Shown: positions 14,109-37,816, counted from the first letter of the stretch. The stretch: 64,000 bases of DNA from IMGVR_UViG_3300023083_000001:62001-126000; one strand, 5' to 3'. Translations and numbers: made by a program. The notes: generated by a model not told the origin, from the letters alone.

Positions 14109-14750
14109 TTACAGCGTACCCAGAACCACCGTAGTACCCGGTTGGTAATAGATACTTGTAGCAGCAACTGTCAGAGTAAATCCAGTCGCACCATTGGCAA
14201 TAGCACCATTGACAATGTCGCTCTGTTCCAACTTGAGACCGTACTTGGTGTTGATCGCAGCAAGCGTTGCCCAGATGGTAGAACCTACTGTCGCCGGTAG
14301 ACTCAACGTTTGACCTTCGAACGCTTCAGAGAGCAGGAAGCGGTGATAGTTGAACGTGTAGTCACCCTGATAACCCGAGGCACGTTTAGCACTCACCTTG
14401 ATGTAGGTGTTCAGGTAATCAGTGGTAGTCGGGTTGACCGTAGGGTTTGCGAAACTAACGGTGTCCAGTGTCAGCGATACCGATTTCTCTTTATTGATTG
14501 CTGCCAGTAACGCAACGATGCCGGACAACGCAAAGCTAGGACGTTTGACTTGGTCAGTCAGTGCGTAACCACTGATCCGTCGAATGTCGATCGGATCTTG
14601 CGAGGTGGTCAATGCGTAGCCGTTTACTTTACGAATTGTCAATGGGTCAACAACCGTCGCCAAAATGTAAGCTGTGGCTTTACGTATTTCTATCGTAGGT
14701 ACCGGCTTGGTGGCTACGTAGACATCAGCTGATCTTAAATTGGTACTCAT
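14109..14750 (-). CDS. tail adaptor-family protein with four 17-aa N-terminal repeats
   Basis: R at aa 6/23/40/57 and Y at 11/28/45/62; adaptor domain (LNT.I.V.A....GY.G..TF.Y.R). Confidence 0.7.
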   Translation of the reverse strand: MSTNLRSADVYVATKPVPTIEIRKATAYILATVVDPLTIRKVNGYALTTSQDPIDIRRISGYALTDQVKRPSFALSGIVALLAAINKEKSVSLTLDTVSFANPTVNPTTTDYLNTYIKVSAKRASGYQGDYTFNYHRFLLSEAFEGQTLSLPATVGSTIWATLAAINTKYGLKLEQSDIVNGAIANGATGFTLTVAATSIYYQPGTTVVLGTL

Positions 14751-14761
14751 GCGCCCTCCTA

Positions 14762-15838
14762 TTAAGTGGCTGGGGTGATGACAAGTTCTAAGTTGGCCAG
14801 ATCAGCCTTGGTAAATTTAGAACCGTCCAGGAGCGCCGCCAGAGAACCAACGCTTACGTTAACAGGAGTCGCACCGGCTGTCATCGCAATCGATATCGGG
14901 GATGTAGAACTACCGTTTACCGATATCGAACCACTGAGAGTCTGATCTCCCGCCGCATCTTTTGCAGAAGCCACTTTAGCATCGACACCAAGGATGGTTA
15001 CGTTACCGAGTACGCTTACATCTACCTTAAGTCTCAAAGGGGTGTTGTCCGATGGAACCCCCACTTTAGGTGCTGCCAACGATGCGGTGTCTTCTCTAGA
15101 TGTGTTCAACGCACCAACGACAGTAGAACCGCTCGGAGGACTGTATCCACTGCCAGAAGCACTCACCAGTGGTACCCGTTTAACCGTTATAGGTCCAAGT
15201 GGTTGAATAGGATCGTTCCCACCTGTCCCGTCATCAGTCAAGCAGTAGATGTCTGACCACGCTAACACGTCTGTAGGAGTTCCTGCGTTGTTCGAGACCC
15301 ACGCGGTAGATGGTGTTCCGCATTGTAAATAACCGTTCTTGAAACCGGCGCTTCGAAGAGCGGCCGGGATAGACACGTACCGTATGAACACACCATCGGC
15401 GTACGCACTGACTGTATTCGCTACGAAGTCGAATACAAGTTCGTAGTACCGATTGAATCCCGCGAAATCGGCGTCTGTGAATGGCGCCATGAGCGAGGCG
15501 GACGAGCCGCTCAGCACTGAGTTGAAACATAAGACGTAGGGTCCACCGAAGGTTGCAATCTTCTCCATTCTAATGCCGATGATGACCTTCACCGGTGTTA
15601 CGTCACCAACGAACAATTTCAAAGGCCACATCACTGGTCCAATCAACTGTGATGGGTTCGCCGCTGGTTTACCCACGATGATGCGGTCATTGACTATCCT
15701 TGGGGCTGGAACGGTAGCGGCTGTGGAAGGAGCCACTGACGGCATGTCTGAATAAGCCAACCCGTAACCGGTGAGTGGCTCGCCTACCGAAAACCCCTCG
15801 GGTAAGTTTTCAAAGCCGAATAGCTTAAGCTTTTTCAT
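14762..15838 (-). CDS. putative tail fibre/receptor-binding protein, ConA/LamG-like paralog L7
   Basis: Beta-rich; IGIR, YYEL.FD...YADG and LGP motifs; conserved C-terminal domain. Confidence 0.6.
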   Translation of the reverse strand: MKKLKLFGFENLPEGFSVGEPLTGYGLAYSDMPSVAPSTAATVPAPRIVNDRIIVGKPAANPSQLIGPVMWPLKLFVGDVTPVKVIIGIRMEKIATFGGPYVLCFNSVLSGSSASLMAPFTDADFAGFNRYYELVFDFVANTVSAYADGVFIRYVSIPAALRSAGFKNGYLQCGTPSTAWVSNNAGTPTDVLAWSDIYCLTDDGTGGNDPIQPLGPITVKRVPLVSASGSGYSPPSGSTVVGALNTSREDTASLAAPKVGVPSDNTPLRLKVDVSVLGNVTILGVDAKVASAKDAAGDQTLSGSISVNGSSTSPISIAMTAGATPVNVSVGSLAALLDGSKFTKADLANLELVITPAT

Positions 15839-15848
15839 GATGGTTCAC

Positions 15849-16952
15849 TTACCCAGTAATAAGTTTGAGTTTAGCCGCGTCCAGCTTCGCTTTGGTCCAA
15901 GCCGTGCCATCGGGAGCATTTCCAGCTACAAGAAGCGAAGTCCCGGACGCCATGACGTCACTAACTGTCAGCGAAGAAACCGCAGACTGATTAGCCCCGG
16001 ATACAACTTGAGCACTGAGATTAGCCGTGCTTCCATCTTTTCTACGGGCGGTCAGATTGTAAGCTACCGCGTTGATAGTGCCAACAAAGACAGGCGCCAC
16101 AAACCCTAAGTTAGCCGTAGGGTTTGCTGGGTCAGATGTTACGATTGGGGTTGATAAACTAGCTGCATCTGTAATAACAGTGTTCAACGCAGACACGACA
16201 TTACCTGCGGGAGTGACTACCCAGGTCGACTGATCCATACTAACCACTGGCGCCACCAATACCCGCTGAGACCCCAGCGGCCCGTTAGCCGTGCCATCGC
16301 TCGTAGTTTCACAGACGTAGATATCTTTGATCCAATAGGAGAAATCTCCCTTTACACCTGTGGACGACGGCGCCCTTCCGATGTTCAAATAACACGCTGT
16401 GCCAGCTTTTAATGCTGTCAGGGTGGTGCTGGTGATAGCAATATCTGCAATCGCAACTCCATCTACCCAACGGTGGATCACACCTGCCGCCACATCCCAC
16501 TGAGCTTCCAGATAATACTCTTGCTTAGATGTGTAGTTGGGAATACTACCTGCTGGGAACGCACAGCCAGTCGTAAGTTGTGCTGTGGTTGGGAGTGCGT
16601 ATGGCGTGATCGACAACGGCTCACTGTAGATATCGATGGCCGTAGTGGAACCTGGGGTACCATTGAGAAACCGTATTCCGATGGTGAACTTAGAAGTGGC
16701 GGTGGTGACCACTAACCCAAGATCACTTAACAGCGCGTTCAAACCGTTGGCTCTGGTCTGTGTCCCGCTGGCAACTAAATCGAAATCGCTGATACGCTTC
16801 AACCAGCCATCTTCGTATTTTGTATCGATATTAGTTCCAGCAGCAGCTGAGGAAGTAACCGATGTAAAAGGCGTTCCGCCCAACTTGACGGAGCCGTTGG
16901 TAACTGGTGGTTTGACCAAGTCCTCCCACCCTATAACTGCACGAATAGCCAT
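15849..16952 (-). CDS. putative tail fibre/RBP, ConA/LamG-like paralog L6
   Basis: MAIRAVIGWE..., YYLEAQWD...VDG, APDG.AWT..KL.AAKLKL. Confidence 0.6.
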   Translation of the reverse strand: MAIRAVIGWEDLVKPPVTNGSVKLGGTPFTSVTSSAAAGTNIDTKYEDGWLKRISDFDLVASGTQTRANGLNALLSDLGLVVTTATSKFTIGIRFLNGTPGSTTAIDIYSEPLSITPYALPTTAQLTTGCAFPAGSIPNYTSKQEYYLEAQWDVAAGVIHRWVDGVAIADIAITSTTLTALKAGTACYLNIGRAPSSTGVKGDFSYWIKDIYVCETTSDGTANGPLGSQRVLVAPVVSMDQSTWVVTPAGNVVSALNTVITDAASLSTPIVTSDPANPTANLGFVAPVFVGTINAVAYNLTARRKDGSTANLSAQVVSGANQSAVSSLTVSDVMASGTSLLVAGNAPDGTAWTKAKLDAAKLKLITG

Positions 16953-17002
16953 GCTTTCTCTCCCATTTGTTTATACAGTGTTGGTCGTCCATGACCGGCG
17001 GG

Positions 17003-18109
17003 TTATCCAGCGATGAGTTTGAGTTTGGCAGCTTGGATGCTGGCTCGAGTCCAGCGCGCGCCCGATGGAGACTTCTCACCTTGATACAACTTGAAACTCG
17101 GTGTAATTACAGAGAGTAAATTGTTAACCACTTGACTGGATTGATCAGTCCCTGTAATAACCTGAGAAGTCAATACGCCGGGCGAACCCCCAGCTTTCTT
17201 ACCCGTAGCGTTCAGAACAATACCGTTAATCTGACCGGCTGTGGAAGACATCGTCAGACCCAGGTTAGCAGTGACGTTATTTGGATCAGTCATAACTACT
17301 GGGGTCAATAAGGAAGCTTCATCCGTAATCGCGGTATTCAACGCTGCTACAGGATCGCCTGACGGTGTGGGTAACCATGACGCTTGATCTAAGGTGGTCA
17401 CGTTGATTGGAACAATACGCTGAGGCCCAAGGAAAGTATCGGCAGATCCATCATCGGTCTTCTCAATGACGTACATGTCCTTGAACCAGAAATCGTACGC
17501 GACAGTTGCGCCGCTGGTAGGTGTGTAACCCACCCCACCAGCAAAGAAAGCGGTGTTGCTGGTGAGTAAATTCTTTACCAACGTAACCATTGACAAATCA
17601 GCGATCGGTAAACCATCTACGCGTCTACGAATGACACCTGCTGTAACGTCAAATTGAGCTTCTAGATAATTCTCGATACCAGGTTTCCAGTTCGGAATGC
17701 TTCCGAATGGAAAAACAGCGCCGGCGGTGACGTTTGCACCAGCGCCACCCGTCGACAAGTCGGCAGTAAGGGAAATGGGTTGCGGCCACATGGAAGACAC
17801 CGTCACGTCCTGAGGTATCAGCCAACGGATACCAATTGTAATCACTGAGGCTGCCGATGTCACTAAGCCTAAGGCTGTCAGCGGGGCGGAGATGAAGTTC
17901 CGTTTACCTGATGTGTTGTTAGCAGTCGCTGGGTTGGTGATTGTTTTAACCCAGCCAGCTTCTTTTAGAAATGAAACACCTGCTCCTGCGGCGGTGCCGA
18001 AGTTAAAACTCATCGGCAGACCAGCGAAAGCGTACTTGGTCGCAGCGCCGTACATCTCACCAGTACGAAGCGCAAGTTCATCAAACCCTAGAATGGCACG
18101 AATAGCCAT
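17003..18109 (-). CDS. putative tail fibre/RBP, ConA/LamG-like paralog L5
   Basis: Start moved to MAIRAILGFD (18109) after a GGAG SD. Confidence 0.6.
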   Translation of the reverse strand: MAIRAILGFDELALRTGEMYGAATKYAFAGLPMSFNFGTAAGAGVSFLKEAGWVKTITNPATANNTSGKRNFISAPLTALGLVTSAASVITIGIRWLIPQDVTVSSMWPQPISLTADLSTGGAGANVTAGAVFPFGSIPNWKPGIENYLEAQFDVTAGVIRRRVDGLPIADLSMVTLVKNLLTSNTAFFAGGVGYTPTSGATVAYDFWFKDMYVIEKTDDGSADTFLGPQRIVPINVTTLDQASWLPTPSGDPVAALNTAITDEASLLTPVVMTDPNNVTANLGLTMSSTAGQINGIVLNATGKKAGGSPGVLTSQVITGTDQSSQVVNNLLSVITPSFKLYQGEKSPSGARWTRASIQAAKLKLIAG

Positions 18110-18120
18110 GGAACACTCCT

Positions 18121-19215
18121 TTATACAACGGTGAGTTTGAGCTTCGCAGCCAGAATTCCAGCACGTGTCCATTTGACACCCGATGGAGACTTCTCACCCT
18201 GATAGAGTTTATACCCGGAAGCCATATTGGATGTCATAGGTACTGATACCGCAGCCGATTGATCGGACCCTGTGATCAGTTGTCCGGTAACAGATGTGCT
18301 GGCGCCAGCGGCTTTCTTACCCGCTATGTTTAGACACACGGCGTTAATAGGCGCTGAGTTTGTAGGTGTCGTCAAACCTACATTGGCTACGTTGTTCGTT
18401 ACATCGTTTGTAACCACTGGCGTCAACAGCGATGCGGCATCGGTAATGTCTGCGTTCAACGCATCCACTGGAGTTCCAGACGGACTCGCCAACCAGGAAG
18501 CTTGGTCCACGCTTGCCGTGGTGATTGGAACAATACGCTGCGCGCCGAGGAATGTGTCGGCGGTCCCATCGCCAGTCTTCTCAATGACGTACATGTCCTT
18601 GAACCAGAATGAGTATTCGATAGTGCCTGGGGTACTGTTGTTAGGTGGAAATAGACCCGCCCCAAACTGCGCCGTTCCTGCGGCAATAGCGGCTGCTAGG
18701 CCAGAAGTGAATGGCAGATCGGCGATCGGGACGCCATCGACTTTCCTGCGGATGACCGCGGCGGCAACGTCCCACTGAGCTTCTAGGTAGTACTCTTGAC
18801 CCGCTACCCAGTTCGGAATTGAGCCGAAAGGAAAAACTGCACCATTGATGAATCCGCTGAAGCTAACCGCGGTAACAATCTCCATTGGCTGAGGCCAATA
18901 GTTACTGACTGTCACGTTGATCGGACACAGCCAGCGCATGCCTATGGTGAAAACCGAACTCGCGGTAGGAGTAAGACCCAGGGATTGGAGCGTACTGTAC
19001 AAATAGTTCATTTTGTTCAGGCCTGTCGACACAGTGGTGACAGTACCTTTACATTTCAACCAACCGCTTTCTTTGGTGTAAGTAACACCGGCAGCAGCCA
19101 GAGGTCCTGGTTTGAATAAGAAGGGAAGTGGACCCAGCGTAAGACCTGCTGTAGGAATCTGTTCCCCAGCGGGCATTGGTACATCGTCGTACCCGAAGAA
19201 ACTACGAATAGCCAT
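18121..19215 (-). CDS. putative tail fibre/RBP, ConA/LamG-like paralog L4
   Basis: Start moved to MAIRSFFGYD (19215); closest to L5. Confidence 0.6.
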   Translation of the reverse strand: MAIRSFFGYDDVPMPAGEQIPTAGLTLGPLPFLFKPGPLAAAGVTYTKESGWLKCKGTVTTVSTGLNKMNYLYSTLQSLGLTPTASSVFTIGMRWLCPINVTVSNYWPQPMEIVTAVSFSGFINGAVFPFGSIPNWVAGQEYYLEAQWDVAAAVIRRKVDGVPIADLPFTSGLAAAIAAGTAQFGAGLFPPNNSTPGTIEYSFWFKDMYVIEKTGDGTADTFLGAQRIVPITTASVDQASWLASPSGTPVDALNADITDAASLLTPVVTNDVTNNVANVGLTTPTNSAPINAVCLNIAGKKAAGASTSVTGQLITGSDQSAAVSVPMTSNMASGYKLYQGEKSPSGVKWTRAGILAAKLKLTVV

Positions 19216-19226
19216 GTTGAAACTCC

Positions 19227-19859
19227 TTAGCTCCAACGAATCGCTGGGTCAGTAAACAAGGTGGAGAACTGCGGCAATGTCTGACCGATCGTGACTTTAG
19301 AACCTGGAATGAACCAGTAGCTAGTGGATTTAGCAACTAGCTCGACCGTGTACGCCGACGCGGAAATCGGCCCATCCACCACGTCATCCACAGTCAACGT
19401 GATACCAACGACCGCACTGATAGCAGATAGCGCTTCGTAGATTGTGGTCGCGGTGCCGAGAGGGATGTTATTCGGATCCAGTGTCATCCTGGAAATAGGG
19501 ACACGGTTGTACCGAAACCATTTGGTTCCTTTGAGTCCTGAAGCTGCTGACGCTTTGACCTGGACTCTGGCATTGTAGTTAGCGTCGTTTGTCAAAGCTT
19601 CGACCGCTACCGCTGTGAAGTCTGTGGTAGGTCGAACGGTGTTGGCCTTGGCTACGATCATCAGCAGAACAGCCTGAAGCCCTGTCACTCCTTTGGGGAG
19701 TGATTTAATGGCTGGACCGATAAGGTATCCACCAATAGACCGAACCCCCACTTGTACTGGGGGGGAGCCGATCAAGTAACCGCTGACAGACCGAAGGCTT
19801 ACTTGGTTAGGGGGTGATACCGCCGCGTAACCGTTAATGGATCTCGCAGTTAAAGGCAT
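19227..19859 (-). CDS. tail adaptor-family protein with three 17-aa N-terminal repeats
   Basis: R at aa 6/23/40 and GY at 10-11/27-28/44-45. Confidence 0.7.
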   Translation of the reverse strand: MPLTARSINGYAAVSPPNQVSLRSVSGYLIGSPPVQVGVRSIGGYLIGPAIKSLPKGVTGLQAVLLMIVAKANTVRPTTDFTAVAVEALTNDANYNARVQVKASAASGLKGTKWFRYNRVPISRMTLDPNNIPLGTATTIYEALSAISAVVGITLTVDDVVDGPISASAYTVELVAKSTSYWFIPGSKVTIGQTLPQFSTLFTDPAIRWS

Positions 19860-19864
19860 GTCAA

Positions 19865-20908
19865 TTACCCCGTAACGTCTGGCGTGATGGTGATGACGGT
19901 CCCGTCAATCTTGCTAGCGTCCCATGCACCACCCGCAGGTGCGGTTGGCAAAGTAGCTATGGTCGATCCGTAAGCCTGCGTTTTCGGTACCGTGAGGTTA
20001 CCCGCTTGGACCGTGGTACCACCTTGAGTGACCTCAATTTTAGCCAAGGTCGCGTTATTACCTTTAGCAATCACCGAAGCCATCAACTGAACAGCGTTGA
20101 TTTTAAAACCTTCTGGCGTATTAGCTTTTAGGCTAAGCTTCAACGGACTTTTGTCTGTCGGAGAATCTACCGTTGCGGTTGCCGGTTGAGCAGCTGTCAA
20201 CGTAGTCAGCATGTTGGTAGTACCATCACTACCTGCCCAGGCTGTTGGAGTGGCCGTCGCTTCATCAGCGTAGACAGGGTAGGTGCTGACCGAACCCAGG
20301 CGTGCAACGATCCCGTCACCAGCGATGTTGTCCAGGATGTACATATCGCGGATGCTGCACAAGTTCGTACCGCCCGACAATGTCAGCGAGAAGAACAATG
20401 AAATTTTACCGGTCTTCATCGTGGCGATGTAAGCTGCGGTAGATACAGCGGTCAACGCTACCGACGATAACAGGAGTCCGTCACCGGAAATGGCCAACGT
20501 GTTCGCTGTAAAATCGATTTCAAATTCCAGATAAATCTCAGCACCTACCGCTTTAGCAGCCGTCGGTAGCAGTGAGTAATCCAACACCCAACCGGCTGTA
20601 CTGAAACCAATGTCAGGCCCCAGGGCAACAAAGTTACCTGTGGCGCCTGCAACCAGGGTTTTATGCCGGAAACCGATGACAATCTTGGTTGGGTTAGGCA
20701 CCAAGAACTGATCGAACGAAATACCAGCAATTGTTGCTGCCGATGTCGACGTGCCTGTGGTGGATGTCAAGGCTCCGTTACTGTCGATGATCAACGGTTT
20801 CCCAGTACTGGCGTTATACCGTGAAACGACGTAGCCTGACGTAGCAATCCACGCGGCGTCGTTAACGTTCCGAACGCAGTGGTCAAACGCAAAGATCTTG
20901 CGCAACAT
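19865..20908 (-). CDS. putative tail fibre/RBP, ConA/LamG-like paralog L3
   Basis: MLRKIFAFDH..., YLEFEID, AP.GGAW...I.....ITPD. Confidence 0.6.
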   Translation of the reverse strand: MLRKIFAFDHCVRNVNDAAWIATSGYVVSRYNASTGKPLIIDSNGALTSTTGTSTSAATIAGISFDQFLVPNPTKIVIGFRHKTLVAGATGNFVALGPDIGFSTAGWVLDYSLLPTAAKAVGAEIYLEFEIDFTANTLAISGDGLLLSSVALTAVSTAAYIATMKTGKISLFFSLTLSGGTNLCSIRDMYILDNIAGDGIVARLGSVSTYPVYADEATATPTAWAGSDGTTNMLTTLTAAQPATATVDSPTDKSPLKLSLKANTPEGFKINAVQLMASVIAKGNNATLAKIEVTQGGTTVQAGNLTVPKTQAYGSTIATLPTAPAGGAWDASKIDGTVITITPDVTG

Positions 20909-20913
20909 GGCAG

Positions 20914-21276
20914 TTACTCCGAATCAGTGTCAGTGGGAACGACTGGATCATTCCAGCACAGGAACAGATCACCTACAGGTGCAGTAGACCACTCTGGGAA
21001 CTTCACACGCAGCGCGTATTTGAAAAGGCTGAGGGTAGCGAACTCACGGTCGTTAAGACCGTTGTAGAGCACTACAGCGCCGTTGAGCGAGTACTCAGCG
21101 GTCATCTCGGTCTGGTTCCACATCTTCTGTTGTGCCATCGGACCGGATGCGTTCAAGGCAGCGGCAATTGCTCGCTGACCGGACTCGTTCAATTCACCTT
21201 CCGGGATAGCCGACAAGAGATCAGCGTGTTCGGTGAAATCGTTTCGGAGTAGATAATTGCGCCAATCAATGGACAT
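20914..21276 (-). CDS. stand-alone C-terminal domain of the adaptor family
   Basis: Aligns by eye with the C-half of 24885..25760 (DF, W, SL.GA.V..NGLN, KYAL, G.L.L.(W/Y)NDP). Confidence 0.65.
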   Translation of the reverse strand: MSIDWRNYLLRNDFTEHADLLSAIPEGELNESGQRAIAAALNASGPMAQQKMWNQTEMTAEYSLNGAVVLYNGLNDREFATLSLFKYALRVKFPEWSTAPVGDLFLCWNDPVVPTDTDSE

Positions 21277-21303
21277 GGTTTTGATCTCTTATCAAAAGGA
21301 GTG

Positions 21304-21801
21304 TTAGAAACCTGGTAGCGTGTCGCCACTGAACGCTGTCTCAATATCGAGCGCAACGTTGAAAGCAACTGTCACTGAACCGAACCAACCCAAGCTGTCT
21401 GGTTTACTTTCGATCAGGAACGTGATCCCACCATCGCCGTCATCCACGGTAGAATGTTCCACCAGGTCGTCGGAGGTAAAGGTAGCCCCTGAAAGGTTTT
21501 TCAGAACCGGTAACATAGCAGCCAGGTTCTGACCGCCAGTCACAGCGATACCTCTGAAGTTAGCCAAGCCTAATGGCGTTACATCCAGGCGGTCGTAGAA
21601 TACCTTAGTGCCACCCATACCCAACGTGGATGAGTCCGTAAACTTGACGCCCACCTTGGTGTTCTTTCCGTACAAGGTCTTCTCAGCCGCAGTAGTTGCA
21701 ACCGGTGTACCGAATACCAGATCACTGACAGGGACAATAATTCCAGCCTTTACGCTGAACATCGCCGCCAGATCCGCTTTACTATCTAAGTAGATTGACA
21801 T
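21304..21801 (-). CDS. stand-alone N-terminal domain of the adaptor family
   Basis: YDRLD, FT.DD, SLGW.GSV and terminal TLPGF motifs. Confidence 0.65.
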   Translation of the reverse strand: MSIYLDSKADLAAMFSVKAGIIVPVSDLVFGTPVATTAAEKTLYGKNTKVGVKFTDSSTLGMGGTKVFYDRLDVTPLGLANFRGIAVTGGQNLAAMLPVLKNLSGATFTSDDLVEHSTVDDGDGGITFLIESKPDSLGWFGSVTVAFNVALDIETAFSGDTLPGF

Positions 21802-21809
21802 GACGGCCT

Positions 21810-22760
21810 CTACGCATTCCAGTGAAGGATAAGTTTACCGCTGAACCAACTAGCGTCCACACTCTGGATCACCATCGCTCGGGTGAACCGTGCGGAGTTA
21901 GCTTCGGGGATGGAGGTAGATGGTAGGGTGTAGATGTAAGCTGTACACCCCGCCAGACCTGATGCGAGGCTGCTGTCAGTTTTAGCCCAGTTGGTCTTAC
22001 CTGAGTTGTTATTGAGCCAGGCAATGACGGCGTCGAGGTTTGCGTTAGCTGCGGTGGTGATCAGGAAACTGGTCGACAGTGCGGCAAGGTTGGCTTTAAC
22101 CGCTGAAGCGTCAAGGCCGTAGAGTTGCCATTCGCCGACAGGTTTGCGACTTTGCGAGAAGTCATTACCACCTGGATAGAGTCGGCCAATCAACGCTCGG
22201 TTAGCGTCGGTAATGATTTCGGTTATAGGACGTTTGGAACGAACCCACTGAAGCGAAACTGTACCTTTGTAGCAAAGGCCGTTAACAGCGATACCGTTGT
22301 AAACGGTATCGGCAGGCACAGTCACTACGGCGGCCATATCGGTTTCGAGGAGACTCAACCCGTATTTTGCGTTAACGTCTGCGATGAATTGGGCACGCGT
22401 GATGGAACCCGCTGCGCTGTAGAAATCAGAACGCATGATCATGTTGCGAAACAGCGCACTCATGTCAATGCGACGATACCTGACAGTGACCTTACCGATC
22501 GTACCTGAACCCGGCGGACCAGACACCAGGACCGAGGTATCACACTTGAAAGGATCTGATGGATCAACAGTAACGGATGCCATCCCAGTAAACTGTACTT
22601 TCGACATCCCGTACGCTGCTTTGAAGCCAGGGTTGGATACTTCGATCAGGTCGTAAATCAGTCGGTTTTGCGGGAGGCGTAGGTCGCTCGGCGGTTGTGC
22701 TGGCGCAGGTGCAGGATCTCCCAACGCATAACCCGTTACGGCACTTAGTGCAATAGTCAT
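21810..22760 (-). CDS. two-domain tail adaptor-family protein with one N-terminal repeat
   Basis: LSAVTGYALG then LIYDLI...NP, YRRID, INAKYGL-like motifs. Confidence 0.65.
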   Translation of the reverse strand: MTIALSAVTGYALGDPAPAPAQPPSDLRLPQNRLIYDLIEVSNPGFKAAYGMSKVQFTGMASVTVDPSDPFKCDTSVLVSGPPGSGTIGKVTVRYRRIDMSALFRNMIMRSDFYSAAGSITRAQFIADVNAKYGLSLLETDMAAVVTVPADTVYNGIAVNGLCYKGTVSLQWVRSKRPITEIITDANRALIGRLYPGGNDFSQSRKPVGEWQLYGLDASAVKANLAALSTSFLITTAANANLDAVIAWLNNNSGKTNWAKTDSSLASGLAGCTAYIYTLPSTSIPEANSARFTRAMVIQSVDASWFSGKLILHWNA

Positions 22761-22763
22761 ATC

Positions 22764-23777
22764 TCAACCTACTGTGTCTGGGGTGATGACTGCCTCACTA
22801 GCGTTCAGTTTACTGATCGTCCACGCCGCTCCATCTGGAGCTTTATGGACTACGCCGAGAGAAGTTCCATAGGAAATTGTGGTCGGCGCAGGTACCGAAG
22901 CCGTTGCTTTGTCAGTGCCGTTCAAACTGAGTTTAGTCAGTGAGGATGTGGCGCCGTCATTGGATTTGTTGGCAACGGACAGTTCGACCGCATTGATGTT
23001 GATCGGGACGGTGTCTTTCAAACCATCCAGTAACAAACCTACGGTCAATGGCGCCTTCGACGATGGGCTGGAAAGAGTCGCTTTCCCCGAAGTGCCGAGA
23101 CCTTTCTTCAACGCTGGAAGAAGTTCGCTAGCGTCACTGGCTGCCCAACCTGTACCTTGCGCCTTATCAAGCAAGACCGGATAGACTTGCCGAGGACCTA
23201 GACGGCCTGTAGGTCCACCGTCTGCGGAGGCCACATCGTTGCTGATGTAAATGTCGCGAAGACTGGCGCGTTGAGTCTTGGCGTACCCGCGTGTCAAGAT
23301 GCCGACTATCGACTGAGCAGTGCCGGCTTTCATTGCCGCGATGTAGGAAGAAAGACTTGGACCATTGCTGATTGCCACGTCGTCCACCCATCGACGTGTT
23401 GCACCTGTCGTTAGGTTGATCTCTACTTCCAAGTAATAGATACCACCCACTTTGACCGATGGAATCTCGCTCATGTAGAAGATCACAGAACCCAGATTAG
23501 GTCCATACATCAACGTATGGTTGGCGTCAAGCACGTCAACCCTTACACGCATCCCAATGTAGACCAGGTTCGCAGGCGCTGCGCAGGCAGCGAAGTGTTT
23601 CAGATACAGACCTTCGGGAATGGTGGTAGCGGTCCCTTGTGGAGTCACCCATCCATTAACAATGGTCGCGGTGTCCGATGCTTCGTTGGCGAACAAAGGA
23701 CCCAGGAAAGGAGACCAAACGCTTTGAGGTACGCTTGGTGGTAAATGTTCAAATCCGATAATTGCTTTAACGGCCAT
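22764..23777 (-). CDS. putative tail fibre/RBP, ConA/LamG-like paralog L2
   Basis: MAVKAIIGFEH..., YYLEVEIN...WVD, APDGAAWT. Confidence 0.6.
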   Translation of the reverse strand: MAVKAIIGFEHLPPSVPQSVWSPFLGPLFANEASDTATIVNGWVTPQGTATTIPEGLYLKHFAACAAPANLVYIGMRVRVDVLDANHTLMYGPNLGSVIFYMSEIPSVKVGGIYYLEVEINLTTGATRRWVDDVAISNGPSLSSYIAAMKAGTAQSIVGILTRGYAKTQRASLRDIYISNDVASADGGPTGRLGPRQVYPVLLDKAQGTGWAASDASELLPALKKGLGTSGKATLSSPSSKAPLTVGLLLDGLKDTVPININAVELSVANKSNDGATSSLTKLSLNGTDKATASVPAPTTISYGTSLGVVHKAPDGAAWTISKLNASEAVITPDTVG

Positions 23778-23792
23778 GTAAATGACTCCTGA

Positions 23793-24827
23793 TTAACTCA
23801 CAATGTCCGGGGTCAGCAACAGTGAGGTCGAATCGATATTGGCCTTCGTCCATGCCACACCACCTGGGGCTTTAGGGTAGACGCCGAGCTGGAACGTGTA
23901 TTTTAGCGTTGTACCCGGAGTCACTGGAGCACCGGCCAGCGTATCAGAACCGTTCTTCAGCGACACACCAAACTGGTTCGAAGCTGTGTTACCGTTACCC
24001 GCAAACAAGAGTGACACGGCATTGATCGTCTGACCGTCAGCTACGTCGCATTTGAGGCTGATGTCCAATGGCGCTTTACTCGCACCAGAGGTTGCTACCG
24101 AAGTGTTGGTTGAATCAGCTGATCGGGTGAGAGTGCTCAACAACGATCCACCATCGGTGGTGGTCCAATCAGTGCCGCTGATTACGTCAGCGTAGATCGG
24201 TACCAACTGCTGAGGGCCCAGCATACCAACAAACCCGTCACCGGCCACGTCATCGGAGACATAGATGTCACGATAAGCCATTGTGCTATTACCTGAGTTG
24301 TTTCCAGAAAAGCGAAACTCAAGGTAGAAAAGACGTGCCAGTAGTTGAGCATTGGTCAGTTCAGCTGGCATGCCGACGTTCTTAATGAACGTGCTGTTGA
24401 CATAAACCGCAATAACTCGAGTGGTGATGTTGAGGACGAATTCGAGATAGCTGATTGCTCCGACAGCACTGTTTGCGGCCGGAAGGTCGCTGTCAGCCAG
24501 AAGCTGCATGGCGTATTTACTCAAATCTGTAAGACCGATGTAATAACTCGATTGAAACGTTTCCACAACCTTCATTCTAATGCCGATGAATATCTTGGTC
24601 GGCGTACCCGATACCGGGAAAGGGGCAAGGTTAAGCATCAGGTTAGTGTACCCGCTAGGCGAAACGCCTGCGGGCGTAGTCAACCAACCGTTGTTATCAA
24701 TGTAAATGTTCTTGCCGAATCCACCGCTAAGACTGGGTGAATATGTGGTGTACCCACTGTTGTACTGCCAGCTATTGAGAGCCAGCAGCTTTGGACAATG
24801 GTCAAAGCCAACCAATGCGCGAAGCAT
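23793..24827 (-). CDS. putative tail fibre/RBP, ConA/LamG-like paralog L1
   Basis: MLRALVGFDH..., YLEFVLN, APGGVAWTKA.I. Confidence 0.6.
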   Translation of the reverse strand: MLRALVGFDHCPKLLALNSWQYNSGYTTYSPSLSGGFGKNIYIDNNGWLTTPAGVSPSGYTNLMLNLAPFPVSGTPTKIFIGIRMKVVETFQSSYYIGLTDLSKYAMQLLADSDLPAANSAVGAISYLEFVLNITTRVIAVYVNSTFIKNVGMPAELTNAQLLARLFYLEFRFSGNNSGNSTMAYRDIYVSDDVAGDGFVGMLGPQQLVPIYADVISGTDWTTTDGGSLLSTLTRSADSTNTSVATSGASKAPLDISLKCDVADGQTINAVSLLFAGNGNTASNQFGVSLKNGSDTLAGAPVTPGTTLKYTFQLGVYPKAPGGVAWTKANIDSTSLLLTPDIVS

Positions 24828-24884: not shown

Positions 24885-25760
24885 TTACGCGTTGAGGTCG
24901 TAAGGATCGTTGTAGTGCAAGTACATGATGCCCGACGGCGTTGTGACGGCGTCACGCAGCTTCAGAGCCAGAGCGTACTTGTAGTTCGGGTTCGTTGGCA
25001 GCGCAGCGCTGTTCAAACCGTTACTTACAACTGTTGCACCCGACAGCGACCAGGTAGCGGTGCTGGACGATTCGTTCCACAGCGTTTTGCCCGAACCGAT
25101 ATCTAGAGCTTTGAACGCTGCAACCAGCGCAGTGACCGTAGCAGCCGGCAGTGCACCGGCGTTCAGCGTAGCCAACGTGTTGAAGTACGACGTGAAGTCG
25201 TAGCCGTACATGTAGAGCTGTGCGTACGTGTCGGTATCGTTCGCGGTTGGGTAGTTCAGACCCTCAAGCGTTGTGTCGGTAACAACCGAGTTCAACGAAG
25301 CACCACCCGCCGTGATGTTCAATGTGACACTGCCGATCCAACCGATGGAGTTGGTTTTGGCAGTCAGCACAACCGAACGAGTACCATCACCTGCGTCTAC
25401 AATCGCAGTGTCTTCGATATCGTCAGTGGTAAAGTGCAAACCGTTCCAGTACGACAGCCATGGGATCAACCCATGTGCAGATGTCACACCGTAACCTGTC
25501 AGGGTAAACCCTTTGAGGTTGGTGCCGTTCAGATCGTTCAGTTTCAAACGATCGTACACGATGGACTTACGGCCTTTGAACTGACCGCCTGCTTTGGCAC
25601 CAACGACAATGCCGGTGTTACGCAGTGTCGTTTGATCTTTCCAGGTACCAGAGACAGGCACCGGGTTACTGAACTCCACGTCGTTCAACGTAAAGGTCGT
25701 CGCGTTCTTCGCATTCAGACCTGCGAGTAGATCAACGACTGATACACTTTGATAGGACAT
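24885..25760 (-). CDS. two-domain tail adaptor-family virion protein
   Basis: Family motifs YDRL, FTTDDI, SIGWIGSV and C-terminal G..YLHYN. Confidence 0.7.
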   Translation of the reverse strand: MSYQSVSVVDLLAGLNAKNATTFTLNDVEFSNPVPVSGTWKDQTTLRNTGIVVGAKAGGQFKGRKSIVYDRLKLNDLNGTNLKGFTLTGYGVTSAHGLIPWLSYWNGLHFTTDDIEDTAIVDAGDGTRSVVLTAKTNSIGWIGSVTLNITAGGASLNSVVTDTTLEGLNYPTANDTDTYAQLYMYGYDFTSYFNTLATLNAGALPAATVTALVAAFKALDIGSGKTLWNESSSTATWSLSGATVVSNGLNSAALPTNPNYKYALALKLRDAVTTPSGIMYLHYNDPYDLNA

Positions 25761-25774
25761 TAACTTCGCTCCGA

Positions 25775-26731
25775 TCAGACGTTGTAGTGGATGTAGTGAG
25801 TACCTGCACCGTACGTCGCTTCAAGCGCGGTTGGAACGGTAAGGATCAATACACGATTGTAATAATCAGCATTAGCCTCAGGCGCCGACAACTTACCTGC
25901 GGCAGTAGACAGATCTACTACGCGACCATTCCAGGTGCTAAAGCCGTACGCCGTACCGTCCGGCGTGTCTGTAACAAGCGTGGTGCCGTAAAGAGCGTTG
26001 AGACGGGTGAGGAAGCGGGCCATCCACTGGATGAGCTGCGTGGATGCGCCTTCCCAGCTATTAGGATAACTATTCCACTTAACGCCAGCCAGGATGAAGT
26101 CAGACCAGTCAACACCGTACGCCATGTTGCTGACAACCACCGCGTGAGCGCCGCTGAAGTCATTACCACCTGGGAACTTACGAGTACCATCCAGATCAGT
26201 CACAGCGATCATGCCCGAAATATCCTGACCATCCGCGCGCCATTTAAGCGTGAACGAACCGGTGTAGCCCAAACTGCCAGGTTTAGCGTTGACGGTGACC
26301 GATGTAGTGTAGTAACCGTTTTCCTGAGTAGAACCCAGCAAGATATTTCCGTCGATCACGTCATCAGTGGTCAAGTTGAGACCGTACTGCTGGTTGATCG
26401 ATTGTAGCAGGTCGTAGACGCTGAAGACGACCGCGTTTGGATTGCCCGAGTTCTGCGCTGTCGAGAACTTGTTGATCTGGATAGTCATACCCCGAGTCAA
26501 CGTGGCCAGGTTCAGACGGCGGTAGTTGACAGACTTACGACCGAGGTAATCTTTACCGGTAATTGCCGCCACCACGACTGCGGTATTCAGAAGCGGTTGA
26601 CCTGCGACGGTAGCAGCAGCTGGGACACCCAAGGTGGCGTTAGCTGGAGATACGGGAATCGGCATCGATGGGTTGGCCTGGTTGATGAGGTCATACACCA
26701 GCGCAGCCGATGACTTGTTGAAAATAGGCAT
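25775..26731 (-). CDS. two-domain tail adaptor-family virion protein
   Basis: YRRLNL, INQQYGLNLTTDD, SLGYTGS, G..YIHYN. Confidence 0.7.
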   Translation of the reverse strand: MPIFNKSSAALVYDLINQANPSMPIPVSPANATLGVPAAATVAGQPLLNTAVVVAAITGKDYLGRKSVNYRRLNLATLTRGMTIQINKFSTAQNSGNPNAVVFSVYDLLQSINQQYGLNLTTDDVIDGNILLGSTQENGYYTTSVTVNAKPGSLGYTGSFTLKWRADGQDISGMIAVTDLDGTRKFPGGNDFSGAHAVVVSNMAYGVDWSDFILAGVKWNSYPNSWEGASTQLIQWMARFLTRLNALYGTTLVTDTPDGTAYGFSTWNGRVVDLSTAAGKLSAPEANADYYNRVLILTVPTALEATYGAGTHYIHYNV

Positions 26732-26736
26732 CTTGA

Positions 26737-27528
26737 TTAAACCTCGTCAAGCAAGTTGTAATGGAGATAGATCGCCCCGGATAGAGCGCTGGCTCCTGGC
26801 GTTCCTTGAATGACCACACGATCAAACAGTGGGTTACTGTCTGGGACCGCCGACGTGGCATGGTCGGTGATTGCACCGAGTGACCATGTAGGGATACCCA
26901 GATAGAGACACGCCGTCTGCAACGCTTTAAAGTCAGTATACCGGCCCGTCTTCGGATCGATCTTGATGAAGTCCCGCAGGCTGGTAAAGTCTTGCCCCCA
27001 CGTTGTCATCCGTGCTGATGCGAGCTGGGTCGCCAGATTGATCGGGTGGCGCAGCTTCTGGAGAATGACCACACGGATGACATCACTCAACAGCGTCCTG
27101 CCGTACAGAACGGTAAGGCTACCTTGGTTGACGTAACCCATGCTGGTCGTTTTGGCAACCAGAGTCAATTCCTGAGGTTGGTCCAGGGTCGGTGTCGGTA
27201 CCGTGAACGGTTCGAAGTCATCAGTCGTCAACGACAAACCAAATTGTTGGTTGATCAGCTCAATGACTGAAGTAGCCGTGAAAGGACTCGTACTTCGAAT
27301 CGCTTGGTCTGTCAGTACCTCACCCAGATCGGCACGGTTGTAGAAGACATCCACGCTGCCTTTATAGATACGACCTGGTACAGCATCGATCGTGACCTTG
27401 GTGTTGTGTTCATCACTTTGGTCAAAGACTGCGGGTTGCAATGAAACGTTGACAAGGTTCAGAGGCTTAGCGGGAGTGTTGACCCGGTTCACCTCAGTGA
27501 GTAACTTGTTAGTCGGAAGCTCTGCCAT
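26737..27528 (-). CDS. two-domain tail adaptor-family virion protein
   Basis: YNRADL, INQQFGLSLTTDD, G..YLHYN. Confidence 0.7.
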   Translation of the reverse strand: MAELPTNKLLTEVNRVNTPAKPLNLVNVSLQPAVFDQSDEHNTKVTIDAVPGRIYKGSVDVFYNRADLGEVLTDQAIRSTSPFTATSVIELINQQFGLSLTTDDFEPFTVPTPTLDQPQELTLVAKTTSMGYVNQGSLTVLYGRTLLSDVIRVVILQKLRHPINLATQLASARMTTWGQDFTSLRDFIKIDPKTGRYTDFKALQTACLYLGIPTWSLGAITDHATSAVPDSNPLFDRVVIQGTPGASALSGAIYLHYNLLDEV

Positions 27529-27544
27529 GACCTAAACCTCGTAG

Positions 27545-28372
27545 TTATAGCGGATCGTCAAAGTGAAGGTACAACGACCCAGACAGACCCAACGAGTTGA
27601 CTTCCAGAAGATCAACCACGATCACGTGTTCGTAATCAGGATTGCTTTCCAGTGGCAGATCCGCAGTCTCACCAGCGTAGCGTACGGTCGCGCCCAAGAG
27701 CGAATAACGCGCTGCCTTATCGCTGACCCAAGCATCTCCTGTAATCGTCTTCAGTGCTTGTAGAATCACTGTACCGATCTGTGTCGCGCCGGTACCCACT
27801 GTCAACAAGTCGTTCGCTGCGGTGAAGTCTCTCCAATACGAATACATCGGAGCGTACGGCTTGGTCACCTGAGCATTCGGATACGACAATCCAGGAAGAG
27901 TGGACTGGAGCACGAAGTCTTCAATCGGCAACGATCCAAGCGCACATGTAAACTTGACAGAACCCAACCAGCCAAGACTGGTGCTCTTAGCCACCAACGT
28001 TACGTCACCTACACCGTTGACCAAACCCGATGGTCCATCGACGATGTCATCAGTTGTGAAGTTGGTACCGTACAGTACGTTCAAGCGCTGTGCGACCGCC
28101 ATCATGGTGTCGAGCTTATAACCCCGAATGTTTGTCGGAACCAACTGCGTCAGATCAGCCAGGTTCAGACGACGATAGCGTACTGTGGCGGCGCCGTCGT
28201 AAGGACTGTTGATGTCTTTGGCGACAATGCTGATCGAGGTATTGGTACCTGACCCATCGTCAGCCACGACTGTCGGATTGCCGTACGTGTATTCGCTCTC
28301 GACCAAGACCACCCCATTAAGGGATTTGATCGCACTGAGGATTTCCTCAAGCGGTCTTTTATACAAAGACAT
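27545..28372 (-). CDS. two-domain tail adaptor-family virion protein
   Basis: YRRLNL, SLGWLGSV, GSLYLHF. Confidence 0.7.
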   Translation of the reverse strand: MSLYKRPLEEILSAIKSLNGVVLVESEYTYGNPTVVADDGSGTNTSISIVAKDINSPYDGAATVRYRRLNLADLTQLVPTNIRGYKLDTMMAVAQRLNVLYGTNFTTDDIVDGPSGLVNGVGDVTLVAKSTSLGWLGSVKFTCALGSLPIEDFVLQSTLPGLSYPNAQVTKPYAPMYSYWRDFTAANDLLTVGTGATQIGTVILQALKTITGDAWVSDKAARYSLLGATVRYAGETADLPLESNPDYEHVIVVDLLEVNSLGLSGSLYLHFDDPL

Positions 28373-28390
28373 ATTTGAAACCCCTTAATA

Positions 28391-29182
28391 CTAATTGAAG
28401 TGGAAGTAAGCCGAGCCGGCGTAGTCTGGACCGCTCACGTTCTTCTGAATGATCACGTTACCGAAGGCCTTGTTGGCTTCCGGGATATTCGCTGTCGAAT
28501 AGATAGCGACGTCGTAACGCTGAGGCACAGGGAAGTTTGCGAACCCAAGGCTGAGCATCAGGTCTTGCACCGCTTTGACATTAGACCAGTAGCCTGCATA
28601 CACACCGAGCTTCTTGGCATCTTCAGTGAAGTCGATGCCCCATGTGCACATACTCAACGACTTCTTCGCCGGTACGATAACGTCAGGGTGTTTCAACACA
28701 CCCAACTTGATATCTGCAAGTGCACCACCCAACAGTGGACGGATACGTTCGAACTTGACCACGAAGTTACCTTCGTACCCCAGCGAGTTATCTTCAGCAA
28801 CAAAGTTCAGGTTGGCCTGCTCGTTACCGCCGATCCATTCGATCTGCTGGTTGACGATGTCACGCTCTTGCAGGTTCAGACCCAGCCGCTTGTTCAGCAG
28901 AGGGAGAATACCGTGCAAGCTATTTTGACCCAAGTCCCTGATGGAAGGACGAGTCTGCCCGAAGATAGTGTTGAAGTTAAAACGCTTGTACTTGAAGGTG
29001 ACGTAACCCTCGTACTCTTCATTGTTGTACATCGTGACCGTGGGAACGTCGACGGTCCCGTCTGCATTCTTTCTAGGCTTGCCGTAGTAGAGATCACCAA
29101 CGGCCAAGTTTACTGGAAGATCGTTGTTTTCATTGATCAGGTCGACCAGCGCCTGTTCCGATGATCCCTGTGTGAGGAACAT
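28391..29182 (-). CDS. two-domain tail adaptor-family virion protein
   Basis: LVDLINENN, YKRFNF, SLGYEG, GSAYFHFN. Confidence 0.7.
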   Translation of the reverse strand: MFLTQGSSEQALVDLINENNDLPVNLAVGDLYYGKPRKNADGTVDVPTVTMYNNEEYEGYVTFKYKRFNFNTIFGQTRPSIRDLGQNSLHGILPLLNKRLGLNLQERDIVNQQIEWIGGNEQANLNFVAEDNSLGYEGNFVVKFERIRPLLGGALADIKLGVLKHPDVIVPAKKSLSMCTWGIDFTEDAKKLGVYAGYWSNVKAVQDLMLSLGFANFPVPQRYDVAIYSTANIPEANKAFGNVIIQKNVSGPDYAGSAYFHFN

Positions 29183-29231
29183 AAAGCATCTCCTGGTTCA
29201 TGGGGAATACCAGCTAACTAACCACAAACAA

Positions 29232-29271
29232 AATAGACAGGAGTGGGGCCGAAACCCCACTCCTGTCTATT
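29232..29271 (-). terminator. intrinsic terminator
   Basis: 17-bp stem AATAGACAGGAGTGGGG/CCCCACTCCTGTCTATT; T-rich tail on the - strand. Confidence 0.65.
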
Positions 29272-29285
29272 CGAAGGGGAGCTGA

Positions 29286-29831
29286 TTATGCGCCAGCAGG
29301 CGGTGCGTAGGTCAGGCCGTTCAGTTCGGTCGTGGTGATGACGCTGCTCAGTTCAACTTCTTCCGATTTCAGTTGGAAGGTCAAGCTGTTGGTGTAACAC
29401 AGGGAGTCAGCATTGGCCACAACTTGCACATCGTGCACTTCGTTCAACGTGCCGGAGAAAGCAGGCAGGTTGCCGTCGACGTAATCGTCAGCCGTCAGGT
29501 TGATACCCAGACGGGCGTTGATTTCAGGGATGATGTCGGAGATCTTGGTGGCATCGCCAACCATGAACACCATGTCACGGCCAGCGCCGGCGGCGACGTA
29601 CACCGATGCGATCTGTGTGGTCAGGTGCAGGCGGTTGTACTTGATGACTACCGAGCCTTTGTAACCCGAACCATCTTCAGCGGTCACGGTCAGACTGGTG
29701 TTCTTCGAACCAGTGTCGACGATTGGCAGATCGAACTGCAACATCTCCTGGGTGAACGACTGACCAGGGTTGCTGGTATTGATGAGGTCAAGAATGACCG
29801 CAACGGGGATTTTGGTTAGATCGTTAGCCAT
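29286..29831 (-). CDS. single-domain tail/fibre adaptor-family virion protein
   Basis: Start moved to MANDLTK (29831); NTSLTV.A..GSGYKG..YNRL; ends VITTTELNGLTYAP. Confidence 0.7.
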   Translation of the reverse strand: MANDLTKIPVAVILDLINTSNPGQSFTQEMLQFDLPIVDTGSKNTSLTVTAEDGSGYKGSVVIKYNRLHLTTQIASVYVAAGAGRDMVFMVGDATKISDIIPEINARLGINLTADDYVDGNLPAFSGTLNEVHDVQVVANADSLCYTNSLTFQLKSEEVELSSVITTTELNGLTYAPPAGA

Positions 29832-29928
29832 GGAATAATTCTCTCGAGAATATACAACAGAAGTGATCGTGTCGGCCGACACATAGAATTGAGGGTGCTC
29901 TTCCTTAAGTTCCTATAGCATCAACAGC

Positions 29929-29959
29929 ATAGAGAGGAGGGTCAACCCCTCCTCTCTAT
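29929..29959 (-). terminator. hairpin terminator
   Basis: 13-bp stem ATAGAGAGGAGGG/CCCTCCTCTCTAT. Confidence 0.6.
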
Positions 29960-30498: not shown

Positions 30499-30526
30499 AC
30501 ATGCAGTCTCATTAAGAGGTTAGATA

Positions 30527-37623: not shown

Positions 37624-37816
37624 TCCATGCTATGGAAAACGCCGTATTTAATACGGTAATATGTAGAGTGCGTGTTAATTCACGTACTTAAAGATTTCTT
37701 TACGCCCTGCGGGACGTAGGATCGCTTTGGTTGGTGCACTAATCAGAGGCGGGCGTCGATCCTAAACACAAAGCTTTGATCACTTAAAGATACCAAATGG
37801 CTATTTGGAGCTGTAC

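Follow-up and report, generated by a model that had tools for sequence, protein, structure and literature searches.

Branched phage assemblies such as G7C gp63.1/gp66, CBA120 TSP1-4, and PhiK64-1 encode their receptor-binding paralogs in a row, together with adaptors that tie them to the baseplate, and dock them through folded N-terminal adaptor domains at fixed stoichiometry. The same kind of gene row occupies the window analyzed here, a 64,000-nucleotide stretch comprising bases 62001-126000 of the 258,357-bp virus record IMGVR_UViG_3300023083_000001, which has terminal repeats; the candidate docking element, however, is a tandem of putative short hairpins, 1 to ~13 in number, built from a 17-residue unit. 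In the window this unit heads three proteins of the DUF7941 family, interleaved with seven genes for lectin-like proteins (L1-L7). On balance, and by no great measure, we favor a reading in which the array of units attaches adjacent lectin-fold proteins to a virion anchor, or helps assemble them there, and the number of units determines valency. The phage is a chimallivirus-like jumbo phage known from metagenomes only; its PhiKZ-type major head protein is encoded in the window (phrog_3231, 2.5e-128), and its nearest cultured relative is Burkholderia phage FLC9, with 34% identity across the 316-aa protein described below (FLC9 gp319).

Two ingredients of the locus are already known: DUF7941, with its baseplate role, and the ConA-like fold, common in phage receptor-binding proteins. 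In the PhiKZ outer baseplate, the band formed by gp139 ends at each star-lobe tip in gp127, which is modeled as one copy per lobe and not as a trimer (PMC13250141). The Goslar study describes DUF7941 proteins as abundant in virions, filaments made by purified gp22, carbohydrate-binding domains on some family members, and a predicted head-to-tail arrangement in which each protomer uses its linker to dock on its neighbor's N-terminal domain (bioRxiv 10.64898/2026.04.21.720040). An outer peripheral baseplate position and head-to-tail filaments are on record for PhiKZ and Goslar only. Like these chimallivirus proteins (PhiKZ gp126/gp127, Goslar gp22/gp23), the window proteins belong to DUF7941, which accounts for the C-terminal two thirds of the 213-aa and 210-aa chains and for all of the 316-aa one, and the locus shares the family habit of many paralogs per genome (18 here), some members being fused to carbohydrate-binding domains. 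What sets it apart from PhiKZ and Goslar is that its putative glycan-binding components come as polypeptides of their own, from genes immediately upstream.

A 17-residue repeat on DUF7941 proteins

The units were delimited by translation, by a lag test, and by a position-specific scoring matrix (PSSM) built from 31 units. They reside in the following genes:

14109..14750, minus strand: 213-aa protein, a four-unit array followed by the N-terminal domain of DUF7941 only (PhiKZ gp127-like), without linker and without C-terminal domain
14547..14750, minus strand: the four-unit array, residues 1-68 of the 213-aa protein (PSSM, lag test, translation)
19227..19859, minus strand: 210-aa protein, a three-unit array and the DUF7941 N-terminal domain (PF25613, 2.5e-17)
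19707..19859, minus strand: the three-unit array, residues 1-51 of the 210-aa protein (PSSM, lag test, translation)
21810..22760, minus strand: 316-aa protein, full-length DUF7941 with one N-terminal unit (PF25613, 7e-30 over the whole profile)
22710..22760, minus strand: the single unit, residues 1-17 of the 316-aa protein (PSSM, 23.4 bits)

The four units of the 213-aa protein place tyrosine at residues 11, 28, 45, and 62 and arginine at 6, 23, 40, and 57; tyrosine recurs at residues 11, 28, and 45 in the three units of the 210-aa protein and stands at residue 11 in the single unit of the 316-aa protein. BLOSUM62 self-scores at lag 17 reach 94 (213-aa) and 78 (210-aa), against maxima of 38 and 30 when the best lag was taken in each of 2000 shuffles, 0/2000 of which reached the observed value. 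Translation and lag test together thus confirm the exact 17-residue period, with the first tyrosine at residue 11 in all three proteins, from which the first-pass annotation of this DNA had started. At the nucleotide level, units share a mere 19-30 of 51 positions with one another, and Tandem Repeats Finder detected no period-51 DNA repeat; the arrays are therefore old and kept at the protein level, not products of recent duplication. The PSSM scores the eight window units at 20.5-28.6 bits and the best segment elsewhere in the 258-kb genome at 13.6 bits, a gap that confines the repeat to three of the 18 DUF7941 copies, all interleaved with the lectin-like genes, as had been claimed.

Each unit is read as running from a strand through a tight N/S/D/G-G turn into an aromatic-led strand and a proline-rich loop, and is recognizable over its 17 residues by an aromatic at position 11 and a basic residue at position 6 or 7. 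The AlphaFold2 (AF2) model pairs strands in every unit of the 213-aa array (pLDDT 37-58), and the unit is tentatively taken as a predicted β-hairpin. In the 15 proteins scanned, the array lies outside every Pfam and NCBIfam model, a PDB search with the repeat profile returned nothing relevant, and the array proteins match no cohesin, dockerin, CW_binding, or other repeat-family Pfam model; with no Pfam, NCBIfam, or PDB entry, the 17-residue unit appears previously undescribed. Nor is an N-terminal 17-residue array described in the available portions of two structural papers (PMC13250141; bioRxiv 10.64898/2026.04.21.720040).

The remainder of each array protein places it among virion anchors. 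PF25613 recognizes the 213-aa protein at 1.2e-20, and its bit scores of 74.6 (213-aa), 63.7 (210-aa), and 104.9 (316-aa) compare with a gathering cut-off of 27; the adaptors also match phrog_2935 and phrog_1037, both "virion structural protein." A profile of full-length DUF7941 paralogs matches the PhiKZ gp127 chain 9xqd_0 (PDB 9xqd) at E 1.5e-18, and the same chain, from the PhiKZ outer baseplate, is the sole match at E ≤ 1e-3 of the AF2 model of the 213-aa protein (E 5e-4, TM 0.63 by target). The adaptor role assigned to these proteins on first inspection is thereby corroborated. Since the 213- and 210-aa proteins retain the DUF7941 N-terminal domain only, they could, by the Goslar model, accept a linker and not donate one. 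Every DUF7941 paralog here carries a linker motif of the type I/L-x3-V-x4-L-x-G-L/F-x-Y-P after the N-terminal domain. Two short paralogs (30527-31129 and 49006-49602, both minus strand) have two linker motifs in tandem (L-N-G-F/L), 24-30 residues apart, and could bind two partners if the linker docks as proposed for Goslar.

Pairing of arrays with two-domain lectin-fold genes

A profile search finds exactly seven lectin-like genes in the genome, all within this cluster:

14762..15838, minus strand: L7, lectin-like two-domain protein, 358 aa (paralog alignment; profile match 5e-103)
15849..16952, minus strand: L6, lectin-like two-domain protein, 367 aa (the AF2-modeled member)
17003..18109, minus strand: L5, lectin-like, 368 aa from the conserved MAIR start (paralog alignment, profile; phrog_2448 2.4e-6)
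18121..19215, minus strand: L4, lectin-like, 364 aa from the conserved MAIR start (paralog alignment, profile)
19865..20908, minus strand: L3, lectin-like, 347 aa (paralog alignment, profile)
22764..23777, minus strand: L2, lectin-like, 337 aa (paralog alignment, profile; phrog_2448 2.5e-5)
23793..24827, minus strand: L1, lectin-like, 344 aa (paralog alignment, profile; phrog_2448 6e-8 over full length)

The starts of the longest open reading frames (ORFs) of L5 (ATG 18172) and L4 (TTG 19236) precede the conserved MAIR, that of L5 overlapping the preceding gene; because the family N-terminus is conserved at 18109 and 19215, these are the real starts.

The coupling between these genes and the arrays was followed through the contigs of 213-aa orthologs and others found by the repeat profile (comparison loci are numbered L001-L020, L001 being FLC9 and L016 the siphophage Strzyga). 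Across eight loci of the clade, all DUF7941 genes directly preceded by a lectin-like gene have an array (16/16) and none of the others do (0/64), a contrast whose Fisher P overstates the evidence because the clade loci are not phylogenetically independent. Within the orthologous group of the 316-aa protein (284-337 aa), an array is present in the window and L002 only, and upstream insertions of lectin genes are likewise confined to these two genomes. The eight units of FLC9 gp310 place arginine at residues 6, 23, ... 125, in the period and register of the window, despite ~34% identity of the shared proteins. Units keep position-specific identities across orthologs, and specific lectin types stay beside specific adaptor families from genome to genome. 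As a side observation, FLC9 gp314 (L001 20304-23774; 1156 aa) combines a lectin-like N-terminal region, LamG-like modules, and two stretches that look like the latter half of an N-terminal DUF7941 domain (adaptor profile 2e-21), a natural fusion that joins the lectin-like and DUF7941 families, though not the repeat. Among 50,697 phage records, no near relative of the module was found by nucleotide search of the module or by tblastn of L6 and of the 73-aa array; L1 gave FLC9 as sole match. No relative of the 210-aa protein was found in the viral contigs searched with that protein.

Regarding the lectin-like proteins themselves, the AF2 model of L6 (pLDDT 84, pTM 0.85) folds into a ConA-like jelly roll followed by a C-terminal β-sandwich. 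Foldseek relates it with probability 1.0 to legume lectins, GH16, PL7, and BoNT Hc-N (TM 0.41-0.49 by target), and the ESM Atlas to a Laminin_G_3 cluster (TM 0.72 by row) and to phage clusters (TM 0.71-0.76), the nearest Atlas cluster being named "Virion structural protein." The lectin-type fold that had been ascribed to the neighboring genes thus finds support in the model of L6 and its structural matches. L1-L7 match no Pfam family at E ≤ 0.1 and L6 no NCBIfam family; the phrog_2448 matches are weak and limited to L1, L2, L3, and L5. "Lectin-like" is here a statement on the modeled fold, not on shown function, and the proteins are candidate glycan-binding tips.

GH16 glucanases and PL7 alginate lyases among the top structural neighbors, together with the "tail assembly protein" annotation of a relative in Erythrobacter phage XM05, would also fit lectin-fold proteins that are non-structural, namely assembly factors or enzymes that act on or near the array protein or host glycans and are co-encoded for regulation only. 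This is the least probable of the explanations considered: seven diverged paralogs per genome typify diversifying receptor-binding proteins rather than chaperones, no HMM of a catalytic family gives a match, roseophage relatives are annotated "virion protein," and the name of the nearest Atlas cluster is likewise a structural one.

A likeness between the repeat and the lectins' own N-terminal strand, also remarked upon in the first-pass annotation, proved partial. Both follow a seven-residue pattern (hydrophobic-R/K-x-hydrophobic-x-G-aromatic); beyond the aromatic, however, acidic residues (D/E) follow in the lectins and hydrophobic ones (A-L) in the repeats, and the unit PSSM does not detect the lectin-like N-termini of this genome. 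The resemblance is weaker in FLC9 and fails outside the clade, being absent in class-B loci. In the monomer model of L6, the protein's own N-terminal strand (residues 2-7) is present at pLDDT 87; a donor-strand exchange of the chaperone-usher type on assembly would still be compatible with it.

The pairing extends well beyond this clade. A 68-column array profile run with hmmsearch against 1.84 billion representative proteins gave 43 matches, the majority of them DUF7941 proteins with 2 to ~13 N-terminal units, some bearing a C-terminal LamG domain in addition. Others are without DUF7941: P0050 joins a SPRY-like domain to 5 units, P0027 a discoidin domain to 5 units and TIG, and P0044 a minor-tail-like domain to 12 units. 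P0025 and P0046 are nearly pure repeat, and P0023, P0029, and P0049 consist of a signal peptide and repeats. Three further matches, P0017, P0026, and P0031, are eukaryote-looking tandem repeats of 17-residue period (GGVRLREVSAYGRCPLT and similar; E 1e-6 to 1e-9), and were treated as spurious, probably the result of convergence or low complexity. In all four of the fetched non-DUF7941 contexts (L011/L012, L013, L014, L015), the array gene is directly adjoined by a gene for a phrog_6368 two-domain protein (E 1e-18 to 1e-43 for full-length copies; four copies in L013). These proteins are ~330 aa long, and the style of their N- and C-terminal motifs is like that of the window's lectin-like proteins.

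Brevundimonas siphophage Strzyga, found by tblastn with one phrog_6368 protein, provides a cultured instance. Its gene order is tape measure, a 361-aa and a 328-aa gene (both of the phrog_6368 kind), an 816-aa array protein, and the baseplate hub gene. The 816-aa protein (L016 5995-8445) combines ~10 units with a glycine-rich domain before them and a distal tail protein domain (DUF2460) after them. Distal tail proteins are the usual attachment ring for receptor-binding proteins, and "evolved" siphophage versions carry carbohydrate-binding insertions. The Strzyga array similarly sits on DUF2460, but the addition is an N-terminal glycine-rich domain plus putative hairpins, and the lectin-fold proteins are separate genes. 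A glycine-rich domain is also present in FLC9 gp310 (L001 27117-30350), from an otherwise unrelated phage; the Strzyga domain matches ALK_LTK_GRD (PF12810, 6.7e-12), and that of gp310 looks similar on visual comparison. In L011 (4923-6933) and L014 (763-3118), the phrog_6368 protein and the repeat protein both have N-terminal signal peptides, and these systems may be bacterial surface or prophage-derived rather than virion parts; further genes of L011 specify proteins with Lcl_C domains and a repeat protein of >1600 aa that is hemagglutinin-like. The link between repeats and lectin-like genes noted on first inspection is supported by a tight coupling across genomes, seen both in the 16/16 versus 0/64 contrast and in this pairing outside the clade. 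That the 17-residue unit is constantly associated with a two-domain family, be it in jumbo phages, in a siphophage, or in other loci, appears to be new.

The phrog_2448-like proteins of the clade and the phrog_6368-like proteins outside it are probably distant relatives. Alignments by hhalign gave E values of 0.28, 0.049, 0.087, and 0.023, the last collinear over both domains, and the two families have overlapping named ESM Atlas neighbors; within PHROGs there were no cross matches at E ≤ 10. Two labels, "FscB" in the Atlas and "N4 gp53-like" in a record, were set aside as uninformative, N4 gp53 being a large tail plug. In two N4-like roseophages, DFL12phi1 (L017 4118-4987) and Sulfitobacter phage AX (L020 5253-6113), an apparent single unit closes the gene that immediately precedes the one for phrog_6368; in DFL12phi1 it reads ...VSLKHMTTYVVLDNP. 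Such a unit lies below profile detection (E about 9). The label "thioredoxin" given to the Sulfitobacter phage AX gene seems mistaken.

These contexts bear on a further proposal, in which each unit duplicates the linker by which DUF7941 protomers dock on one another and binds a DUF7941 N-terminal domain, so that the array proteins would act as branch points or cross-linkers, the lectin N-termini plugging in likewise. The linker motif shares a hydrophobic-x-G-aromatic core with the units, two paralogs carry it in tandem, and docking of the linker on the next N-terminal domain is predicted in the Goslar study (bioRxiv 10.64898/2026.04.21.720040). The proposal was nevertheless downgraded to a slim likelihood, below that of the strict pairing taken up in the next section: the common core is just four residues, arrays correlate with lectin genes and not with DUF7941 copy number, and the unit occurs with its lectin-fold neighbors in phages and loci without any DUF7941.

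Unit number and lectin-gene number

In transcription order the module reads L1, L2, the 316-aa gene (one unit), the 165-aa gene, the 120-aa gene, L3, the 210-aa gene (three units), L4-L7, and the 213-aa gene (four units), and is accompanied by these DUF7941 genes:

21304..21801, minus strand: 165-aa protein, DUF7941 N-terminal domain and C-terminal linker motif (TLPGF), no repeat
20914..21276, minus strand: 120-aa protein, like the C-terminal domain of DUF7941 (profile match 1e-7)
24885..31129, minus strand: eight repeat-free DUF7941 paralogs upstream of the module (291, 318, 263, 275, 263, 198, 179, and 200 aa)

Over 20914-21801 (minus strand), a DUF7941 protein is seemingly split into the 165- and 120-aa genes, the 120-aa product having the same kind of ending as other paralogs; the pair is kept at the same position in FLC9, L002, L004, L006, L009, and L010, and this conservation across six loci identifies it as a stable arrangement, not a frameshift.

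The first-pass annotation had counted four lectin-like genes before the four-repeat gene and three before the three-repeat gene, and had proposed one repeat per lectin paralog. The former count is correct, L4-L7 directly preceding the four-repeat gene; the latter is not, as only L3 directly precedes the three-repeat gene, L1 and L2 standing before the one-repeat gene and the 316-, 165-, and 120-aa genes separating L2 from L3. The window blocks are thus two lectin-like genes before one unit, one before three, and four before four. In relatives the numbers drift further. Orthologs of the 213-aa protein have 2, 3, or 4 units, and those of the 210-aa protein in L002, L004, L005, and L006 have 4; orthologs of the 316-aa protein have 0 units in L004, L005, L006, L009, L010, and FLC9 and 2 units in L002. 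By block, the numbers of lectin-like genes before units are as follows:

L002: 1 before 2, 2 before 4, 2 before 3
L004/L005: none before none, 2 before 4, 1 before 1, 2 before 3
L006: 2 before 4, at least 1 before 2 (contig with gaps of N)
L008: 2 before ~6, 2 before ~9
L009: 5 before 6
L010: 2 before 12
FLC9: 6 before 8

Genome totals of lectin genes to units in seven genomes are 7/8, 5/9, 5/8, 6/8, 5/6, 2/12, and at least 5/15. Their rank correlation across the six complete genomes is rho -0.48, and unit number is unrelated to lectin-gene number. The idea of one repeat per lectin paralog, with repeat count tracking lectin count across genomes, accordingly fails in the seven-genome comparison.

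A scaffoldin-like branched hub, in which each unit donates one β-strand to one specific lectin paralog and tips equal units, therefore receives only a small likelihood. It accommodates the four-gene, four-unit block of the window, a per-block correlation of rho 0.60 (P 0.019, n = 15, non-independent points, with outliers of 2 before 12 and 2 before 9), the position-specific identities that units keep across orthologs, and the persistence of specific lectin types next to specific adaptor families. It does not accommodate the other window blocks, relatives ranging up to 2 before 12, or genome totals that do not track; moreover, compared with L002 and L004, the four-unit block of the window has gained two extra lectins (L5, L6) and just one extra unit. 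The analogy with the cellulosome is limited in the same way. Its scaffoldin has in common with the proposed hub the idea of a repeat-bearing scaffold that displays several carbohydrate-active or carbohydrate-binding subunits, in its case through cohesin-dockerin pairs; here, however, cohesin and dockerin domains are absent, the units span 17 residues as opposed to folded domains of ~150, and their number mismatches that of partner genes.

A copy number of 1 to ~13, irrespective of partner genes, is reminiscent of fiber shafts, and the main rival to the favored reading is an array that folds on itself or oligomerizes into a β-hairpin shaft or solenoid of variable length, serving as spacer, stalk, or ligand-binding repeat, with the lectin-fold proteins as neighboring fiber components. 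The adenovirus triple β-spiral and the choline-binding and CROP repeats likewise have a hairpin unit of 15-20 residues with a turn glycine, an aromatic, and variable copy number. Hydrophobic residues at positions 3, 5, 8, 11, and 13 and Gly 10 recall the adenovirus shaft repeat in particular, as a lead only. Each unit is modeled as a hairpin in AF2, and the proteins with little besides repeats (P0025, P0046), or with repeats and a signal peptide (P0023, P0029, P0049), would also suit a shaft. Unlike those families, though, the unit has no HMM or structural match, including CW_binding or any other repeat family of Pfam, and exists in single-unit versions (the 316-aa protein; a 180-aa protein in L004), which cannot form a solenoid. 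A shaft also leaves unexplained that arrays, although borne by four anchor types unrelated to one another, lie solely beside lectin-fold genes, and the PhiKZ gp127 anchor is modeled as one copy per star lobe and not as a trimer (PMC13250141). For these reasons a shaft is considered unlikely, albeit appreciably more credible than strict pairing.

Away from the module, window positions 37784-40078 are GC-rich (0.575 vs. about 0.51) with long ORFs on both strands. The plus-strand ORF is the PhiKZ-type major head protein; the antisense 725-aa ORF is without any match and probably a by-product of codon bias.

Proposed attachment and valency, and their significance

In the favored explanation, the array would be a portable module working with adjacent two-domain proteins (ConA-like jelly roll plus β-sandwich) and attaching them to, or co-assembling them with, a virion anchor. 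The anchor here would be the DUF7941 N-terminal domain, plugging into the DUF7941/baseplate network, and valency would be set by array length and not by the number of lectin genes; it would follow that paralogs share or compete for units, none owning one. Array proteins and lectin-fold proteins probably assemble together, though not as one repeat per lectin gene. Such an arrangement presupposes physical contact between the two, a virion location in this phage, and glycan binding at the tips, all of which would build on what is observed, namely the repeat, the two folds, the family memberships, the gene-neighborhood rule, and the lack of one-to-one tracking between units and lectin genes. A complex prediction of the 213-aa protein, the 291-aa DUF7941 paralog, and L6 scored 0.75 for L6, against 0.00 and 0.00 for unrelated partners; replacing the DUF7941 chain that lacks the repeat gave 0.63. 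The prediction printed no interface contacts and weighs neither for nor against binding.

Several points count against the favored explanation. The pLDDT of the array makes even the hairpin tentative, and homology between the phrog_2448-like and phrog_6368-like families is not established by sequence. The lack of a relation between unit and lectin-gene numbers in genome totals and the shared ancestry of the clade loci belong here as well. Finally, phrog_6368 proteins are found without a detectable array in N4-like roseophages, vibriophages, RcXuper, and XM05, so that lectin-fold proteins do not need the array; the dependence is one-way, in that every array examined had such a neighbor and the converse fails.

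More broadly, the hairpin unit might be a general portable docking peptide, grafted in tandem on DUF7941, distal tail, minor tail, or SPRY/discoidin anchors to display interchangeable ConA-fold receptor-binding proteins, with valency governed by unit number and composition by competition among paralogs. This extension is a serious possibility that we would nonetheless place on the lesser side of even.

Host recognition by jumbo phages of the PhiKZ/Goslar type is a setting in which such a module would matter, as their outer baseplate and fibers are largely unmodeled and a DUF7941 "fibre cloud" was proposed only in 2026. The locus offers a testable hypothesis of how separate putative glycan-binding proteins hang on the DUF7941 network, and the unit signature could find such modules in metagenomes. 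Burkholderia phage FLC9 (gp310-gp316) and Brevundimonas phage Strzyga (genes 00700-00720) provide cultured entry points. If the array is indeed a multivalent docking peptide, it would afford a compact, engineerable route to altering the valency and specificity of phage receptor binding, and there is a real chance that a more general docking principle lies behind the modular attachment of receptor-binding proteins.

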